A model generated the notes under the pieces. That model was not told where the DNA came from. It did no database searches and was given only the letters and a program-made list of their open reading frames with translations. DNA of 35,091 nt from Octopus bimaculoides (Eukaryota), in NCBI RefSeq assembly GCF_001194135.2, contig NC_068982.1, positions 98,555,097-98,590,187 on the forward strand. The letters are read 5' to 3'. The stretch's first letter is position 1; every line of letters starts with the position of its first letter. Shown piece after piece: positions 2,960 through 28,282 of this stretch. Position numbers and translations under genes: made by a program.

Positions 2960-3162
2960 CTTTTAATTGTTTTCAGTCATTAGACTGAGGCCATGCTGGG
3001 GCAGAGAAATTTTAGTCGACCCCAGTACTTTTTCCTCATTTAAGCCTGGCACTTGTTCTATCATTCTCTTTTGCCGAACTGTTAAGTCACAGGGACATAA
3101 ACACACCACATTGATTATCAATTAGTGGTGGTGGACACACACACACACACAAACACACACAA

Positions 3163-3224
<62 letters not shown>
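2960..3224 (-). mobile_element. SINE family A, 3' half (tail to internal CA/TA microsatellite)
   Basis: Reverse complement matches the 3' half of the full copy at 29674-30082 (CTTAACAGTTCGGCAAAAGAGA, CAGCATGGCC, AATGACTGAAAACAA) and ends in the internal (CA)n(TA)n tract. Confidence 0.85.
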
Positions 3225-3225
<1 letters not shown>

Positions 3226-3388
3226 AGTATATTTGCCATCTAAATGTGGTGGTCCCATGGGAGACGATGCAACTGTTGTTTATAGCCCCAGGAAGACATC
3301 TCTTCTAGCTGGTTAACGACACACTGTCTGTGTCCGATCAGTATTTGCGAAGAGGAATCATCGTTCCCATCTCTAACCTTACGTGATA

Positions 3389-3433
3389 CGCACGGATCCG
3401 GGTTTCTGGGTAAGAACCCCTCATCAGCGTGTG
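3389..3433 (-). ncRNA. Minimal type I hammerhead-ribozyme-like motif, degenerate
   Basis: Minus strand reads CACACG-CUGAUGA-GGGG UUCUUA CCCA-GAAA-CCCGG-AUC-CGUGCG. Core, stem II (GGG/CCC) and stem I (CACACG/CGUGCG, one mismatch) are present, with deviations at the 10.1/11.1 and 15.2/16.2 pairs. Confidence 0.5.
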
Positions 3434-4063
3434 ACAACAGTAGCATCGTCCGATATGGGCCAGCCACATTTAGGTGGCAAATATACTTCACGATGTTGTG
3501 CTGCTACTCTTTACAACTCGCTCAGAAATTTATTATTGCTTGTTTCCATTTTTTCGAGTTCAGCGACGGTTTGTCACTGGAAAAAGCATATAGTATTTTG
3601 CGTTTGGAATCAGTTCTCATTCCTAGCTGGTGATTGTCACGCTGATGTGAGTTGTGACTTTTTGTTTGAATTTCTGAATTGTTGAATTGCGGAATTGTTG
3701 AGTTGATGTGTTGTTGAATTGTTGAATTATTGAATGTTGTATTGCATTTGTGAAATTGTTGAAGATTTTGTTTGGCTTTCNNNNNNNNNNNNNNNNNNNN
3801 NNNNNNNNNNNNNNNNNNNNNNNNNNNNNNNNNNNNNNNNNNNNNNNNNNNNNNNNNNNNNNNNNNNNNNNNNNNNNNNNNNNNNNNNNNNNNNNNNNNN
3901 NNNNNNNNNNNNNNNNNNNNNNNNNNNNNNNNNNNNNNNNNNNNNNNNNNNNNNNNNNNNNNNNNNNNNNNNNNNNNNNNNNNNNNNNNNNNNNNNNNNN
4001 NNNNNNNNNNNNNNNNNNNNNNNNNNNNNNNNNNNNNNNNNNNNNNNNNNNNNNNNNNNNNNN

Positions 4064-5206
4064 AAGTGGTAAGCGTTGGGGAGGTGGAGGAGTATTTGAG
4101 GACGTGAAGGAGGTAACGACATTCTGTAGCAGAGGAGGAAGATTTGGCGTGGTGGAGCAACGCTTCATTGATGAGATCGAAGCGGGGAGGTGCTCCTCCG
4201 TAGCCCTGGGATCGGTACGGTGGGCACTCTTATCTGCTTGCTGTAACAGACGCGCGGCCGGAGTAGGGATGGGAGAGTGCCGCCCGAAATTGGCGAGGAG
4301 TGGCTTGTGGCAGCCATCCTCTACGGTAGGGGGGAGAAGGCAGAGATGCTGAAGATGTCGAGGACAACGGGAGTCGGCTGGTGGGGGTGTGGCCTGGAGG
4401 TGATGGTACATATCGGTCTGCCTGACCTCCACAAAATTGTGGGAGAGATGGTCCTACCCGACGAGGCTACATTGAGAATCATGGTGGAGGGCGGACCGCC
4501 GATATGTTTCGAATGTGGAGTGGGGGCACATGAAGGCGGGGTGTCCCCAGAAACACGAACGAGAGGTGGAGTGCCAGAAGGAATCCAATGTAGTGGCTGA
4601 GAGGAGAACAGTTCACTGAGGTGGAGAGGAGATGAGAGGAAGTGGTGAATCCCTTCCAAGAGGAAAGGAAAGAGGAAGAAATGAAGGGAAAGAGGAAGAA
4701 ATGAAGCAGCGGGAGTTCGAACACGGGAGCCGGAGCCTTCAGCGAATGAGGAGGAGGAGGGACAGAAGGAGCTGGAAGACGAGCAACAGAGCGAAATGGA
4801 AATGCCAGCGCTGGTGACAGAGGGTGAAGAGGGAGTGTTACCCAAAGGAAAACATGAAGGACTGATAGTGATGTACGCGAAAGGTGTTGAAATGGAAAAG
4901 CGAGTTGCAAAAATGAAAGGTGTAATAAGAGAGAGATTGTCAGAAAAGGAGAATAAAAACCTGAAAGCAGTGTTGCTGGATGACGAAGGAGCGGCTGGAC
5001 TGACAGAGATATTCGGAAGCAGAATGGACAATATACCGTATCGGGTTCGATACGATGTATTACCACCAGTGGTAAATTTTGCAGATCTAAATATGTTTGG
5101 GGGGGGATATACACGATATAAACTGAATTGTAAAAACAGCAAAATGGAACTTCTACTTTGTGGGGTAGAAAACCATTTCATCATCATAATTTTTCACACC
5201 TCATAA
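4064..5206 (+). pseudogene. Frameshifted retroelement ORF1/Gag-like protein (RRM-like segment, CCHC zinc knuckle, acidic linker, unknown C-terminal domain)
   Basis: Spliced frames give ...GVGMGE/VPPEIGEEWLVAAILYG...LRIMVEGGPPICFECGVG/HMKAGCP. A CX2CX4HX4C knuckle (4505-4544) is restored by adding 2 nt to the G-run at 4522-4526. The distal 136-aa frame 4796-5206 is open. The purine-rich composition is distinct from the flanks. Confidence 0.75.
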
Positions 5207-5546
5207 TTCATTCGTAAATCATTCTATGTACCCCACGTTTGTCCTTGTAATGTCCTTTCTATATTAAGGCTTTATCCCTATAATAAAGAGAAAAGCTGGT
5301 GATTGTTATTACCAAGAAACCAGGATTCGTGAGTATCACGTAAGGCTACTGATGGAAACTATGATTTCCCTTCGCAAATACTGATCGTAAATACAGTTTG
5401 TCGTTAGCCAGCTGGAGGAGATGTCTTCCTAGGGCTATAAATTACAGTAGCATCGTCCCATATGGGTCAGCTACATTTAGGTGGCAAACGTACTTCACGA
5501 TGTCGTGCTGCTACTGTTTACATCTCGCTCAGAAATTTATTATTGC

Positions 5547-5700
5547 CTATATATATATGTATACGATGAGCTTCTTTCAGTTTCCGCCTATAAAATCTAC
5601 CCCTAAGGCTCTGGTCTGTGGTTATATAGTGGAAGACACCCAAGGTGTCATGCAATGGGACTGAAACCGGAACTACACGACCATGCCTTCGCCTGTATTA
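5547..5700 (-). mobile_element. SINE family A, 5' half (continuation of 2960-3224)
   Basis: TATATATGTATACGATGAGCTTCTTTCAGTTTCCG...GAAGACAC...GGGACTGAAACCGGAAC is the reverse complement of the head and core of copy 29674-29850. Confidence 0.85.
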
Positions 5701-5992
5701 TTATATATCATATATAATTATATATTACTGATTGTATATTCGAAAGAATTTCATTCAGTCAGTCACTACAAAGTGCTTCTCACTACGTGCGATCGATCGA
5801 GCAACACTGATTAATACACATCGTCATCATTGTTTTTTTTTTCCGACTTTTCTATGCTTCCAAGGTCAGACGGTTTTTGTTGAGGCAGCTTTTCTACAGT
5901 CAGATGCAGGACGGGATTAAGAACCACAGAGGCCTTAAGCACTCAAAAGATTTTGGTGCTCGAAAGAAGCCAGTTCTATGTATGTATGTATG

Positions 5993-6045
<53 letters not shown>

Positions 6046-6914
6046 NNNNNNNNNNNNNNNNNNNNNNNNNNNNNNNNNNNNNNNNNNNNNNNNNNNNNNN
6101 NNNNNNNNNNNNNNNNNNNNNNNNNNNNNNNNNNNNNNNNNNNNNNNNNNNNNNNNNNNNNNNNNNNNNNNNNNNNNNNNNNNNNNNNNNNNNNNNNNNN
6201 NNNNNNNNNNNNNNNNNNNNNNNNNNNNNNNNNNNNNNNNNNNNNNNNNNNNNNNNNNNNNNNNNNNNNNNNNNNNNNNNNNNNNNNNNNNNNNNNNNNN
6301 NNNNNNNNNNNNNNNNNNNNNNNNNNNNNNNNNNNNNNNNNNNNNNNNNNNNNNNNNNNNNNNNNNNNNNNNNNNNNNNNNNNNNNNNNNNNNNNNNNNN
6401 NNNNNNNNNNNNNNNNNNNNNNNNNNNNNNNNNNNNNNNNNNNNNNNNNNNNNNNNNNNNNNNNNNNNNNNNNNNNNNNNNNNNNNNNNNNNNNNNNNNN
6501 NNNNNNNNNNNNNNNNNNNNNNNNNNNNNNNNNNNNNNNNNNNNNNNNNNNNNNNNNNNNNNNNNNNNNNNNNNNNNNNNNNNNNNNNNNNNNNNNNNNN
6601 NNNNNNNNNNNNNNNNNNNNNNNNNNNNNNNNNNNNNNNNNNNNNNNNNNNNNNNNNNNNNNNNNNNNNNNNNNNNNNNNNNNNNNNNNNNNNNNNNNNN
6701 NNNNNNNNNNNNNNNNNNNNNNNNNNNNNNNNNNNNNNNNNNNNNNNNNNNNNNNNNNNNNNNNNNNNNNNNNNNNNNNNNNNNNNNNNNNNNNNNNNNN
6801 NNNNNNNNNNNNNNNNNNNNNNNNNNNNNNNNNNNNNNNNNNNNNNNNTTTCTCATGGCCAGACATGTTCTCGCAGAATACTGGAAGTCAAAGATACTAC
6901 TTGAAGATTCATGA

Positions 6915-6981
<67 letters not shown>

Positions 6982-7793
6982 GAGTATACAAAAAATTACA
7001 AGATTGTTCGGTAGGACTGAATACGGTTCTATGTGGTTGCGAAGCAAACATTGTAAACATTTGGCCATTTGTATGTATGTGTGTATGTATGTTTGTATGT
7101 ATGTATGTTTGTATGTATGTATGTATGTATGTATGTATGTATGTATGTATGTATCAAAGGTACAACAGAAAGAATAAAACAAACAGAAACCATCAAAACA
7201 CAACATGCGGGAAAAAGGACGATAGCACGACAACGGGGCAAAACAAGATACACAGGTCATTCGCAGCCAGTTGCTTCTTCAGTCGGAATCCGGAATGTCT
7301 TCGTAGTTTCACACACTTATCTCCGATACTACTCGAAACCGGCTGGGCGAGGGACTAAAAGCATTAAGCTTCGGGGAAAGGCAAACGAATGTACATATAG
7401 AAAACAAATAAGTAAACAACAGAAGGGGTGTTTCGACTACCGGTTGAACGTAACATATGAAATAGAGCTATACATTTACAATGGACAAACGCCTTTCGGC
7501 TATACAACAGAAGGAAAGTAATTATACAATTACAACAAATATAAAACAAAACAAACGGTCTTTCGACTATCAGACGAGTGTAGTAAACTAACGCAAGAAA
7601 AATGGAAACGGAAAAATCTTAACAGACTGGACGGCAGGACAGAACAGAACAGACGCGATGTGATGTGATGTTGTGTGGTATGGTGGTGTATGGTGTTGTG
7701 GTGAGTGGTGTGGTGTGAGGTGAGAGTGGAGAAAGCAAAGGGTGTGGGTTAGGCTGAAGGTGGGGTTAGAGGTGGGATATGTGGGAGTGGGTT

Positions 7794-8173
7794 AGAAGGT
7801 ACACGAAGCAATAGCTTGCTAGAAAGTGGAAGTAACCGCCCCACCCCAACTTAACCACCAATCTTACTGAAAATATGCAACGGACCAACAGAAATCGGGC
7901 AAAGGAGCGGAATTTAACATACTATCTCAGTTATAAACGTAACGGATTTACGAGGCGAGATGGGTGGAGAATTGAGGCACTAACCAGAATTCGAAATCAT
8001 GATCCAGGTATATCTGTTACCCAATTCTACGGCTTTTTAGCTGAGATAGTATGTTAAATTCCGCTCGTTTGCCAGATTTCTGTTGGTCCGTTGCATATTT
8101 TCATTGAGATTGGTGGTTAAGCTGGGGGGCTTTATTTCCACTTTCTAGCAAGATGGTGCTTCGTGTACCTTCT
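7794..8173. mobile_element. Palindromic MITE-like or foldback element with ~137-bp inverted arms
   Basis: 7794-7930 is the reverse complement of 8041-8173 at roughly 88-90% identity by eye, with a ~110-bp spacer. No clear TSD. Confidence 0.7.
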
Positions 8174-9355
8174 CATATAATTATGAATTCACTGTATAGC
8201 TGTTTAATGCTAATATCGCTTGTTATCACTAATGCTATTATTGTTGTTATTATCAATTATTTAGATTTGCTACTGATAATGATAATAATAATAATAGAAT
8301 CTTTACGAATATTCATTTGAACATTTACTCAATATATATATATATATATANNNNNNNNNNNNNNNNNNNNNNNNNNNNNNNNNNNNNNNNNNNNNNNNNN
8401 NNNNNNNNNNNNNNNNNNNNNNNNNNNNNNNNNNNNNNNNNNNNNNNNNNNNNNNNNNNNNNNNNNNNNNNNNNNNNNNNNNNNNNNNNNNNNNNNNNNN
8501 NNNNNNNNNNNNNNNNNNNNNNNNNNNNNNNNNNNNNNNNNNNNNNNNNNNNNNNNNNNNNNNNNNNNNNNNNNNNNNNNNNNNNNNNNNNNNNNNNNNN
8601 NNNNNNNNNNNNNNNNNNNNNNNNNNNNNNNNNNNNNNNNNNNNNNNNNNNNNNNNNNNNNNNNNNNNNNNNNNNNNNNNNNNNNNNNNNNNNNNNNNNN
8701 NNNNNNNNNNNNNNNNNNNNNNNNNNNNNNNNNNNNNNNNNNNNNNNNNNNNNNNNNNNNNNNNNNNNNNNNNNNNNNNNNNNNNNNNNNNNNNNNNNNN
8801 NNNNNNNNNNNNNNNNNNNNNNNNNNNNNNNNNNNNNNNNNNNNNNNNNNNNNNNNNNNNNNNNNNNNNNNNNNNNNNNNNNNNNNNNNNNNNNNNNNNN
8901 NNNNNNNNNNNNNNNNNNNNNNNNNNNNNNNNNNNNNNNNNNNNNNNNNNNNNNNNNNNNNNNNNNNNNNNNNNNNNNNNNNNNNNNNNNNNNNNNNNNN
9001 NNNNNNNNNNNNNNNNNNNNNNNNNNNNNNNNNNNNNNNNNNNNNNNNNNNNNNNNNNNNNNNNNNNNNNNNNNNNNNNNNNNNNNNNNNNNNNNNNNNN
9101 NNNNNNNNNNNNNNNNNNNNNNNNNNNNNNNNNNNNNNNNNNNNNNNNNNNNNNNNNNNNNNNNNNNNNNNNNNNNNNNNNNNNNNNNNNNNNNNNNNNN
9201 NNNNGTGTGTGTGTGTGTAAATGTGTGGGTCATATACGGATTGCAATTTTAATAGATTTCTTATGTGCAAAACTCCTTTAAATTCACTTATTTAAGAAAA
9301 TCATATATTTGCAAATTAAAAAGATTGAAGATAATGTGTTTGTTTGTGAGCGTGA

Positions 9356-9375
9356 AAGAAAGAAAGAAAGAAGGA

Positions 9376-9430
<55 letters not shown>

Positions 9431-9470
9431 GAATAAAGAAAGAAAGAAAGAAAGGAATAAAGAAAGAAAG
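9356..9470. repeat. (GAAA)n microsatellite
   Basis: Directly visible, with GGAATAAA interruptions. Confidence 0.95.
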
Positions 9471-9914
9471 ATCAATATATGTACTCAACATTTTTATATT
9501 AGCAAGTTAGAGAGGTTTTGGGAGGTTTTTTTTGTCACGGTGTTCTCCATACTAGCTTTTATTTGATTGTTATATAAAATTTATTTATGGAAAAGTTTCC
9601 GTTTTTGTCTCTTGATTTCCGTAGCAATCTTGTCTCGGATGTTTGTGTGTTTCGTCTAACTGGGGAACGAGATATACATCTACGTAGAGAGCGTTGACTT
9701 ATAAGTCATTCACACTGCGACCGCCACTGCCACACATCTTAAAAAGTACATGAGTTTTAGATTTTGTGAGCGTGAGAATCATGTCTAATCTATTTCGTGT
9801 ATATTTAGTTGTGTTAATAGCAACAACTACTATACAACAATAATAACAACAACAACAATAATAATAATAACAATATTTTAATATATCTCAAGAGTTCAAC
9901 ACTATATTTATTTC

Positions 9915-9975
9915 ATTTTCATTTTTCATTTTATCCAGTTTCAGCTCATGAGCTGTGGCCATGCTGGGGCACCGC
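9915..9975 (-). mobile_element. SINE family A, 3' end fragment
   Basis: TTTCAG...GGCCATGCTGGGGCACCGCC matches the reverse complement of the family tail (GGTGCTCCAGCATGGCC); followed by (TTTA)n. Confidence 0.6.
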
Positions 9976-10102
9976 CATTTATTTATTTATTCATTTATTT
10001 ATTTATTCATTTATTTATTTATTTATTTAAAGAAATGTAATTTTTACAAATGATTAAGTTTTACACATTTGCGAAAGAGAAGAAAGAGCGATATAAGTAT
10101 AT

Positions 10103-10230
10103 AGGCTCTGGCGTTGCTGTGCGGTAAGAACCTTGATTCCCAACCTCATGGTTCCGGGTTCAGTCCCACTGCGTAACACCTTGGGCAAGTGTCTTCTACT
10201 ATAGCCTTGGGCCGACCAACCCCCTGCTAG
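10103..10230 (+). mobile_element. SINE family A, 5' part running into a gap
   Basis: GCTGTGCGGTAAG...B-box-like GGTTCAGTCC...CCTTGGGCAAGTGTCTTCTACTATAGCC, homologous to 29674-29790. Confidence 0.88.
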
Positions 10231-23836: not shown

Positions 23837-24104
23837 TATTTCCGTAACTTGGTTTCGTGCTTCCATCCAAGCATTTGCTCAGTTATTTTCAGTGGACCTC
23901 GCCGGAGCATGTCACGTGATGTTTGACATCGGTGGTATTTGTCTGCTCTAAAACTGGAGGCTTAAAATGGGAGACGTCATTTGGAATGCTGATTTTGTTT
24001 TTCCGTCTCAGATTATACCTATAATGTCGAGTATGGTTTATATTAAAAACCTAGCAGTTATTAAAGAAACCACTGATACGTTAACTAAGTTACATCGTCA
24101 ACAG

Positions 24105-27441: not shown

Positions 27442-28031
27442 GGTGCGATGGGGAAATTGTCACCATGTTATACTTTTACTTTCGCGCATGCGCATTGTTT
27501 GTTTTTAATTTTGTCGACTATACAGTATAGTACGGTCAGTTGGACACTGTCTGTGAGAAAAACAGCACCATGACGCAATTAACTCTGCCAGAAATTTGGA
27601 AACGACATGTACTGCTTGGTGTTCGCGCTGAAAGCGCCAATACAAACATTTCAGGGTGTTTGGGAGTCGATCTGAGGACAGCGCAAACTGAGGATGTGTA
27701 CCGAGAGTGATAAAATCTAAACATCCAGTCAACATCACGGTATTTGGAATAACCACTAGTGATGCCGACGTTGTGCCTCCATTCATTTTCCCACACGGCC
27801 TCACACTCAACACGGAGGCCTATATCAAGTGCCTAGAAGAAGTAGTGCCGCTCTGGGTTAAGAGTGTGGCTCCTGAAGACCCTATGTCTGGCAATACGAC
27901 TCTGCAGGATGCCACACAAGCAGGAGAACCCAGTCAAGGCTGTCAGACAATTTCTGCGACCACATCACCCCTAAAATTTGACCACCTCACTCCCCAGACT
28001 GCAACCCCCTTGATTATTATGTGTGGAGCAC
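27439..28031 (+). mobile_element. Internally deleted, 3'-truncated Tc1/mariner transposon, maT (DD37D) type
   Basis: TA|CAGGGTG terminus and ATG at 27570 (MTQLTLPEIWKRH...GVDLRTAQ). After a large deletion it reads KHPVNITVFGI...PPFIF...YIKCLEEVV. After a frameshift it reads YVWQYDSAGCHTS...I*PPHSPDCNPLDYYVW. The catalytic D residues at 27898 and 28012 are separated by 37 residues. Confidence 0.92.
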
Positions 28032-28282
28032 ATTGCAATGTGCCGTTAATACGAATGTCTTTTCGTGGTTTAGGATTTGACTGTCCTTTTTAGCATGTAA
28101 GAAGTCTACATGGTGGTCTTCAATCCGTGTATAAATTTTTATACACTATTATATTATTATAAAAATATTTGCTTCTTCTGACTTTTGTTACGCATGCTGA
28201 CCACTGGTATGGATTATTATCTTAATAATTTTTACCTTTGTATTTATATGTGTGTGTGAGTGTGTGTGTGTGTGAGTGTGTA

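Follow-up and report, generated by a model that had tools for sequence, protein, structure and literature searches.

Organization of the element

The window analysed here is a 35,091-nt stretch of the Octopus bimaculoides genome (GCF_001194135.2, NC_068982.1), a microsatellite- and repeat-rich draft sequence with 12 assembly gaps. Near its left end lies an element of about 2.3 kb, which is probably a decayed copy of a non-autonomous, protein-coding octopod retroelement. In this element, a pseudogene related to the first open reading frame (ORF1) of long interspersed nuclear elements (LINEs) is placed between repeats arranged like the pseudo-long terminal repeats (pLTRs) of Penelope-like elements (PLEs), and no reverse transcriptase (RT) is encoded. 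The octopod DNA compared comprised nine stretches, about 210 kb in total, including L001 (O. vulgaris, OX597840), L002 (O. vulgaris, OX597833), L003 (O. bimaculoides, CM046605), L004, L005 and L007 (O. sinensis), L006 (O. bimaculoides) and L008 (Argonauta). L005 served as the gapless reference copy for the layout and for the comparison of the gap. The repeat at the right end of the element is divided below into the segments a, b, c and d, and the features are, in window positions:

3136-3225: (CA)n then (TA)n microsatellite, the left insertion flank (sequence)
3225-3433, minus strand: inverted, 5'-truncated 3' module, a-b-c without d (repeat comparison, nhmmer)
3389-3433, minus strand: hammerhead-like motif (core pattern, descriptor)
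3434-3539, plus strand: direct partial upstream copy, a pLTR remnant, with c at 3434-3488 and d at 3489-3539 (92.2% identity to 5444-5546)
3540-3780, plus strand: 5' leader (aligns with the L005 and L002 leaders)
3781-4063: assembly gap of 283 N (compared with L005)
4064-5206, plus strand: LINE-ORF1-like pseudogene (reading frames, family alignment)
5207-5294, plus strand: 3' untranslated region (UTR) with a tail of the type seen in LINEs and short interspersed nuclear elements (SINEs), AATAAA at 5282-5287 (3' UTR profile, targeted search)
5295-5495, plus strand: right a-b-c module, which has lost its motif through an 18-nt deletion (aligned against the inverted copy, L004 and L005)
5496-5546, plus strand: segment d, the 51-nt "tail" (equals the first bases of a following unit)
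5548-5557: (TA)n, the right insertion flank (sequence)

The order of the repeats is thus inverted a-b-c, direct c-d, leader, gap, ORF, 3' UTR and a-b-c-d. This geometry had been proposed in a first-pass annotation of the window, and it is borne out by repeat comparison; the AATAAA signal given there is likewise present. Positions 3437-3539 and 5444-5546 lie in the same orientation and are 92.2% identical over 103 nt, and 3225-3417 matches the reverse complement of 5305-5495 with 81-82% identity over ~200 nt (81% over 204 nt when the whole inverted copy, 3225-3433, is aligned to the right repeat). Against the repeat profile, nhmmer gave E = 1e-64 for the inverted copy and E = 9.5e-57 for the right copy. 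The whole block is bounded by the (CA)n(TA)n ending at 3225 and by the (TA)n at 5548-5557, and a second copy of the repeat or of the ORF was not found elsewhere in the 35-kb window. The window copy is dead, and it is not recent, because its direct repeats have diverged by 8%.

Segment d had been counted as a proper part of the 3' repeat, but it behaves as an optional tail. It sits after c and before the leader in the left repeats of the window and L005, and it is missing from L004, from the right repeat of L005 and from the inverted copy of the window. A DNA transposon with terminal inverted repeats and a TA target was considered and rejected, as just one end bears an inverted copy, the repeat at the opposite end being in direct orientation. 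A tRNA-derived repeat was also rejected, ARAGORN giving no match.

The leader profile, to which the leaders of L005 and L002 align, matches the window with nhmmer E = 7e-59, and a (TTGAATTG)n repeat occupies 3666-3745 inside the leader. The leader positions 3626-3647 duplicate the junction at which the 3' UTR meets the hammerhead-like motif (GCTGGTGATTGTCAC-GCTGATG), so that in a tandem view of the element a direct repeat of ~20 nt (3626-3647 versus the junction at 5295-5306) brackets the module. The duplicate diverges at GTGAGT, which resembles a splice donor. L002 has an analogue with its own, different sequence, at 9917-9935 and 11655-11672.

Copies of the element in other octopods

The same layout was found in L005, L004 and L002, in support of the first-pass proposal of an RT-less chimera of PLE-type repeats and a LINE-ORF1-like gene. 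The ORF thus also lies beside or between such repeats outside the window: the L005 copy is complete, that of L004 is 5'-truncated and that of L002 is decayed. L005 is composed of an inverted c-d (8763-8910), a full left repeat (8891 to about 9170), a leader, the ORF, a 3' UTR and a right repeat (11087-11326); it measures 2.4 kb in total and contains one ORF and no RT. Its ORF, from the ATG at 9523 to the stop at 10863, is itself frameshifted, and its left and right repeats are 92.5% identical over 213 nt. The L004 copy terminates with c and lies between a (CA)n(TA)n tract and an (AT)n tract. In L002, one ORF is situated in ~2.1 kb between (TA)n tracts, together with an inverted 5' hairpin (9674-9730) and a decayed motif.

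The window ORF is 27-37% identical in amino acids to the ORFs of L002, L004 and L005. Because of this low identity, the three copies are taken as independent insertions of old subfamilies and not as orthologues. The junction of the 3' UTR with the hammerhead-like motif is nevertheless identical in arrangement and orientation in all four module-bearing copies, which come from three species. The repeats of the window and L004 are 74-76% identical, while their ORFs share ~35% of amino acids and give no blastn match; the window and L005 share 68% of ORF DNA over 292 nt, while their repeats are less alike by eye. This discordant conservation of ORF and module between subfamilies may hint at module exchange.

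The comparison with L005 also bears on the assembly gap, which the first-pass annotation had judged too small to hide an RT, provided that its size is right. The matched points 3774 and 4064 are 290 nt apart in the window, and their counterparts in L005, 9372 and 9763, are 391 nt apart, an interval taken up by the end of the leader and the start of the ORF only. The window and L005 sequences on both sides of the gap fit one element. Judged by L005, the gap size estimate appears roughly right, and the gap should hold the end of the leader, a start codon near 3824 and ~80 codons. On the same comparison it cannot hide an RT, because the gapless 2.4-kb homologue has one ORF, and the earlier judgement is upheld. 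The reading frame across the gap carries little weight, because the window ORF is frameshifted anyway.

The ORF and its protein family

The first-pass annotation had described a zinc-knuckle ORF; the stretch at 4064-5206 is a pseudogene. In six-frame translation, its coding path shifts frame at least four times: to align the family proteins over 4095-5098, the window frames 3, 2, 3 and 2 are needed in turn. One frameshift falls within the CCHC knuckle (4505-4544), three stops interrupt the charged linker and the normal stop is lost, and the open stretch is limited to 4796-5206. The C-terminal domain ends near 5098, and by homology the 3' UTR starts near 5099, at the stop-codon site of the relatives. 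The window copy covers the family from about residue 85 to the end.

The protein family was recovered by an exhaustive HMMER search with the stitched translation of the window ORF, which yielded 131 relatives, the best family matches having E = 1e-25. Word-indexed protein searches with the CCHC part, the C-terminal part and the family profile returned nothing useful, and exact look-ups of the 136-aa ORF of the window and of the UniRef-only relatives matched no contigs. The full-length matches are octopod proteins of ~340-620 aa, or fragments, from O. bimaculoides, O. sinensis, O. vulgaris and Argonauta hians, with a typical length of ~400 aa; several are annotated as uncharacterised octopus proteins. 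They share an N-terminal region, the blocks "TRGKKYGTVEVRF" and "VPPE..WLVAA", a CCHC knuckle, a charged linker and a C-terminal domain ("EMEKRIAKMK ... PVVNFEEL") that is conserved across the family. Pfam recognises the knuckle alone and has no family match for the C-terminal domain. The zf-CCHC match of the window ORF, whose knuckle is split by the frameshift, stays below the cut-off (E = 0.014), and the relative P0009 passes it (22.0 versus 20.8 bits). The AlphaFold2 model of the intact member P0024 has a predicted local distance difference test score of ~90 over residues 30-260, and Foldseek gives it weak matches to proteins with tandem RNA recognition motifs (RRMs; probability 0.87-0.99, E ~3e-3). 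The model weakly suggests RRM-like folds which, with the CCHC knuckle and the C-terminal domain, would place the family among RNA-binding proteins of the ORF1p-like type.

Between L006 and L003, both from O. bimaculoides, dS is 0.38, dN is 0.086 and dN/dS is 0.23 over 217 codons. Given this low ratio, most of the divergence arose under constraint on the protein, that is, under purifying selection in these relatives of the window copy.

The homologues in L001, L007 and L008 are 27-31% identical in amino acids to the window ORF, more distant relatives than those in the short RT-less elements, and are directly followed by an ORF2. Scans of the ORF2 of L001 and L008 revealed Exo_endo_phos and RVT_1 domains in both and zf-RVT in L001. 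Because an ORF2 bearing an apurinic/apyrimidinic endonuclease (APE) and an RT immediately follows, these homologues are the ORF1 of an ordinary APE-type LINE, and the earlier assignment of the gene as LINE-ORF1/Gag-like stands. ORF2 is absent in the window, L002, L003, L004 and L005. In L001, three full-length LINEs (ORF1 plus an ORF2 with APE, RT and zf-RVT) are arranged head to tail at 4438-19184 with a period of 5273 bp and ~99% identity, a tandem array that is unusual for a LINE.

A LINE/SINE-type tail inside the element

The last ~80 nt of the 3' UTR (5215-5294) read ..GTCCCCTCT.TGT..GGCC.TTGTG.C.ATAATAAAGA. The 3' UTR profile matches its four source copies of family B and also a SINE in the window (nhmmer E = 9.7e-6), and in targeted nhmmer searches it matched, more weakly, the 3' end of the LINE in L001 (E = 4e-4) and in L007 (E = 4e-3). 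The window SINE lies at 23601-23836 on the minus strand (23581-23856 with its flanks) and has a perfect 20-bp target duplication, GAAACCAAGTTACGGAAATA; its own 3' tail resembles both the LINE 3' ends and the 3' UTR of the ORF1-only family, and ARAGORN detects no tRNA in it.

The L008 LINE and the window SINE stop at the tail and have target duplications of 15-20 bp in non-(TA)n DNA. The ORF1-only family, in contrast, runs 200-250 nt past the tail, through a-b-c with or without d, and then meets (TA)n. Because the LINE/SINE tail lies within the element and a separate module gives the terminus, the body (ORF and 3' UTR) looks like a "half-LINE", derived from an APE-type LINE without its ORF2. 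This character had gone unnoticed in the earlier reading of the sequence.

The hammerhead-like motif

In the inverted copy of the window, the motif reads CACACG-CUGAUGA-G-GGGU/UCUU/ACCC-A-GAAA-CCCGGAUC^CGUGCG, and the consensus of the inverted copy and L004 is CACACR-CUGAUGA-N-GGGU/loop/ACCC-A-GAAAC-(CCGG/UUGG)-RUC^CGUGYG. The site in the inverted copy is the sole CUGANGA..GAAA match on both strands of the 35 kb. A relaxed type-I descriptor applied to both strands of 209 kb found two sites, namely this one and that of L004, where 0.07 were expected from shuffled sequences. Helix I stays paired across the subfamilies (CACACR/CGUGUG, CCAGA/UCUGG and UCUACA/UUUAGA), and the segment 15.1-16.1 in L005 and L002 is the palindrome ACUAGU, a type described for the minimal hammerheads of PLEs (PMC4209133). 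The core boxes are kept in all repeat copies that retain the segment, with single core changes in the left repeat of L005 and a decayed core in L002. The motif is hammerhead-like as judged from its conservation and covariation, and it may act as a ribozyme.

The first-pass annotation had called the terminal repeats ribozyme-bearing, but in the right repeat the 5' half of the motif is deleted. Between 5306 and 5307, 18 nt are missing, namely CUGAUGA together with the 5' strand of helix I and half of helix II; with these lost, the right copy cannot form a hammerhead, and the motif is kept only in the inverted left copy. The "CTGGTGA" at 5296-5302 was considered as a mutated core and rejected, since alignment with L004 and L005 places it in the upstream 3' UTR. 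Helix I of the inverted copy was likewise considered as junction filler, and the same alignment shows it to be helix I.

A genuine PLE in L002 (1-3703) served as the control. Its 288-bp pLTRs are 98.6% identical and both contain a hammerhead core with a 12-bp helix I, which shares extra nucleotides beside helix II with the family. By our own reading it carries RT (YRDDGL) and GIY-YIG-type motifs with one premature stop; Pfam and PDB sequence searches did not recognise its RT and endonuclease, so that it is identified by these motifs together with its pLTRs and hammerhead core. Its right end abuts (TA)n.

Penelope-type insertion features

Insertions of PLEs leave a partial upstream tandem, an inverted 5'-truncated copy and an optional tail in an AT-rich or (TA)n target, the kind of site that PLE endonucleases favour (PMC8557442, PMC11167929). 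All of these are seen here. A partial head-to-tail tandem, in the form of direct pLTRs, is present in the window (3434-3539 versus 5441-5546, 92% identity) and in L005 (92.5%), and an inverted 5'-truncated copy stands by the upstream pLTR in three of the three full-length copies (window, L005 and L002). The copies end either at c (the window inverted copy, L004 and the right repeat of L005) or at c plus the 51-nt d (the right repeat of the window). The published optional tails are shorter, 30-40 bp (PMC8557442, PMC11167929), and have been traced to two internal start sites of the RT, a feature called unique to PLEs (PMC11167929). From its 5'-truncation it is evident that the L004 copy was reverse-transcribed from the end of c, rather than from the LINE tail. 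Flanks of (TA)n are seen in the window, L004 and L002, and are less clear in L005.

A PLE-type RT or GIY-YIG ORF was found neither in the window copy nor in those of L002 and L005, in which the ORF1-like frame is the sole ORF. Octopus genomes hold many PLE families (PMC13282606).

Mobilisation and alternative explanations

We consider it fairly likely, from these sequence comparisons, that the element is a non-autonomous chimera of a LINE ORF1 and a PLE end which is mobilised by a PLE enzyme; the use of a PLE enzyme is proposed because of the insertion scars. The a-b-c module (~200 nt), which lies downstream of the LINE tail AATAAAGA and opens with the minimal type-I hammerhead-like motif, would be the true 3' terminus, with d as an optional 51 nt. 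The element would be transcribed through the AATAAA, and the ORF1-like protein would coat its RNA. A Penelope-like RT/GIY-YIG enzyme acting in trans would nick (TA)n DNA, and reverse transcription would start in the module from either of two positions, one that includes d and one that does not, producing the PLE scars (pLTR, inverted 5'-truncated copy and optional tail). The hammerhead would trim multimeric transcripts.

Several observations weigh against this reading. When the window, L004 and L005 are scanned with the Rfam hammerhead models, neither the gathering score nor a threshold of E <= 10 yields a match; this test has little power, because the genuine PLE core in L002 is missed too. 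The folding energy of the motif is no better than that of shuffled sequence, helix II is weak in the L005 type, and an unpaired base stands before G12, which is unusual for a hammerhead. An autonomous PLE sharing the a-b-c module was not found among the ~210 kb of octopod DNA. Identity to the inverted copy of the window is lower (81-84%) than identity between the direct copies (92%), which could mean that the inverted copy is older, stems from a different template or belongs to another insertion event. The similarity of the LINE and family UTRs is short and moderately significant, and the leader has no significant similarity to the LINE by nhmmer; clearly homologous LINE and family leaders had been assumed at first, but nhmmer supports only the 3' tail, and that moderately. 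As the LINE-type tail is kept, some copies could have been mobilised by a LINE. Finally, L003 contains ORF1-only units in direct tandem at 9965-14589 (period 1553 bp, 91% identity, interrupted by assembly gaps), in which AATAAAG and 75 nt are followed by the next start codon, with no hammerhead module.

The last two points also favour an element comparable to mammalian HAL1, that is, a half-LINE moved by the ORF2 protein of a related LINE, whose PLE features would be secondary rearrangements or carried debris. Such an origin agrees with the homology of the ORF to the ORF1 of APE- and RT-bearing LINEs, with the LINE/SINE-type tail of the 3' UTR, with the precedent of HAL1 itself (PMC5753468) and with the tandem arrangement of the LINE in L001. 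We regard it as unlikely. HAL1-like elements have a homologous ORF1 and no ORF2, as here, but carry the LINE tail at the very end and target duplications of 7-20 bp, whereas the tail of the octopod element is internal, and c or c-d, inside (TA)n, forms the end of all four copies that bear the module. The start of reverse transcription in L004, at the end of c, points the same way, as do the L008 LINE and the window SINE, which do end at the tail, with target duplications in non-(TA)n DNA; moreover, PLEs are characterised by both the inverted 5' copy and the optional tail (PMC8557442, PMC11167929). Slightly less likely again is a deletion derivative of an unseen autonomous PLE whose upstream gag-like ORF1 is native to a PLE lineage instead of captured from a LINE, the arrangement known from Chlamys-2_cBra of Chara. 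The literature describes a PLE that has a zf-CCHC ORF upstream and a hammerhead on its 3' side (PMC8557442), and simple loss of the RT-endonuclease ORF would give the observed layout of ORF, 3' UTR and hammerhead. However, the sole RT-linked relatives found are LINE ORF1s, a LINE/SINE tail lies in the 3' UTR directly after the ORF, and none of the nine stretches has an ORF1 joined to a PLE RT.

The density of microsatellites and repeats in the window invites the suspicion of a chance composite, in which an ORF1-only fragment inserted into a microsatellite hotspot next to the remains of an unrelated Penelope element or retrozyme. TA repeats do attract several kinds of insertion, as the three TA-flanked elements hosted by the TA tracts of L002 show, and the older look of the inverted copy would suit this origin. 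We hold it to be quite improbable, as the succession of 3' UTR, AATAAAGA, hammerhead-like motif, b and c recurs in the four non-orthologous copies despite ORF identities of 27-37%, the module and the ORF are linked in all four, and the whole layout is repeated in L005. An autonomous element with its RT in the assembly gap has next to no likelihood: the length of the gap is an estimate only, but the 391 nt of L005 are filled by leader and ORF start, and the L002 copy measures 2.1 kb in all.

Other features of the compared stretches

Some features lie outside the subjects above. In L002, inverted arms at 15128-15268 and 15657-15798, 95% complementary and with (TA)n on both sides, form a structure at 15070-15795 with a CTGACGA...GAAA stretch between the arms. 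A different SINE is inserted in the 3' UTR of the family copy in L004 (11100-11500). At 27707-28093, the window contains a 128-aa ORF that by eye is like the C-terminal part of a Tc1/mariner-type transposase, with no Pfam match at E <= 0.01.

Implications and comparison with known systems

The usual view is that a non-autonomous retroelement exploits the machinery of its own class, LINEs in the case of SINEs and HAL1, and PLEs or LTR elements in that of retrozymes. The ORF1-only element in the window, in contrast, probably hitch-hikes on another class. More tentatively, octopods could harbour a long-lived and diversifying cross-class lineage in which a LINE-derived ORF1 under purifying selection rides on the PLE machinery. 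If the chimera is mobilised as proposed, modules would have been exchanged between the LINE and Penelope-like classes, a gag/ORF1p-type chaperone could serve a PLE-type RT, and the element would be a coding counterpart of the animal retrozymes. It would also offer a natural test of how PLEs recognise their template, through the a-b-c(-d) module, and could show whether an ORF1p-type protein aids PLE-type retrotransposition. In repeat annotations of cephalopod genomes, a copy will probably appear as separate "LINE", "Penelope" and "unknown" pieces or be called a host gene. Full-text literature searches found no description of such an element.

The endonuclease-bearing (EN+) PLEs, such as Penelope/Poseidon, Neptune and Nematis, share with the octopod element the partial tandem pLTRs, the inverted 5'-truncated copy, the optional tail and the AT-rich or (TA)n target, and their repeats carry a minimal type-I hammerhead, to which the hammerhead-like motif may correspond; the octopod element differs in having a LINE-ORF1-type ORF and an internal LINE tail, and no RT/GIY-YIG ORF. 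In the case of HAL1 of mammals, the resemblance is that of an ORF1-only, non-autonomous LINE derivative with a constrained ORF (PMC5753468), but HAL1 ends like L1 and is moved by the L1 ORF2p, whereas the octopod family adds a 3' module with a hammerhead-like motif and PLE scars. The LINE ORF1 proteins of the L1/Tx1 and related types have RRM-like folds followed by a CCHC knuckle, an order that the octopod protein may share, and homologues of the octopod protein stand directly upstream of an ORF2 with APE and RT, while the gene of the octopod element stands alone. The metazoan non-LTR retrozymes and non-autonomous PLE derivatives such as MRC1 of Chlamydomonas also lack an RT; they carry hammerheads, frequently form tandems and are believed to rely on PLEs (PMC7229834, PMC8557442, bioRxiv 10.64898/2026.07.22.740005). 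Retrozymes, however, are tandem non-coding monomers of 170-400 nt with a type-I hammerhead, expressed as circRNA (PMC7229834), and the octopod unit measures ~2.3 kb and has a protein of ~400 aa. Compared by its description, Chlamys-2_cBra of Chara braunii is similar in that a gag-like ORF with a CCHC knuckle, placed upstream, and a 3' hammerhead occur in one PLE (PMC8557442), but it is an autonomous, RT-bearing element of a green alga.

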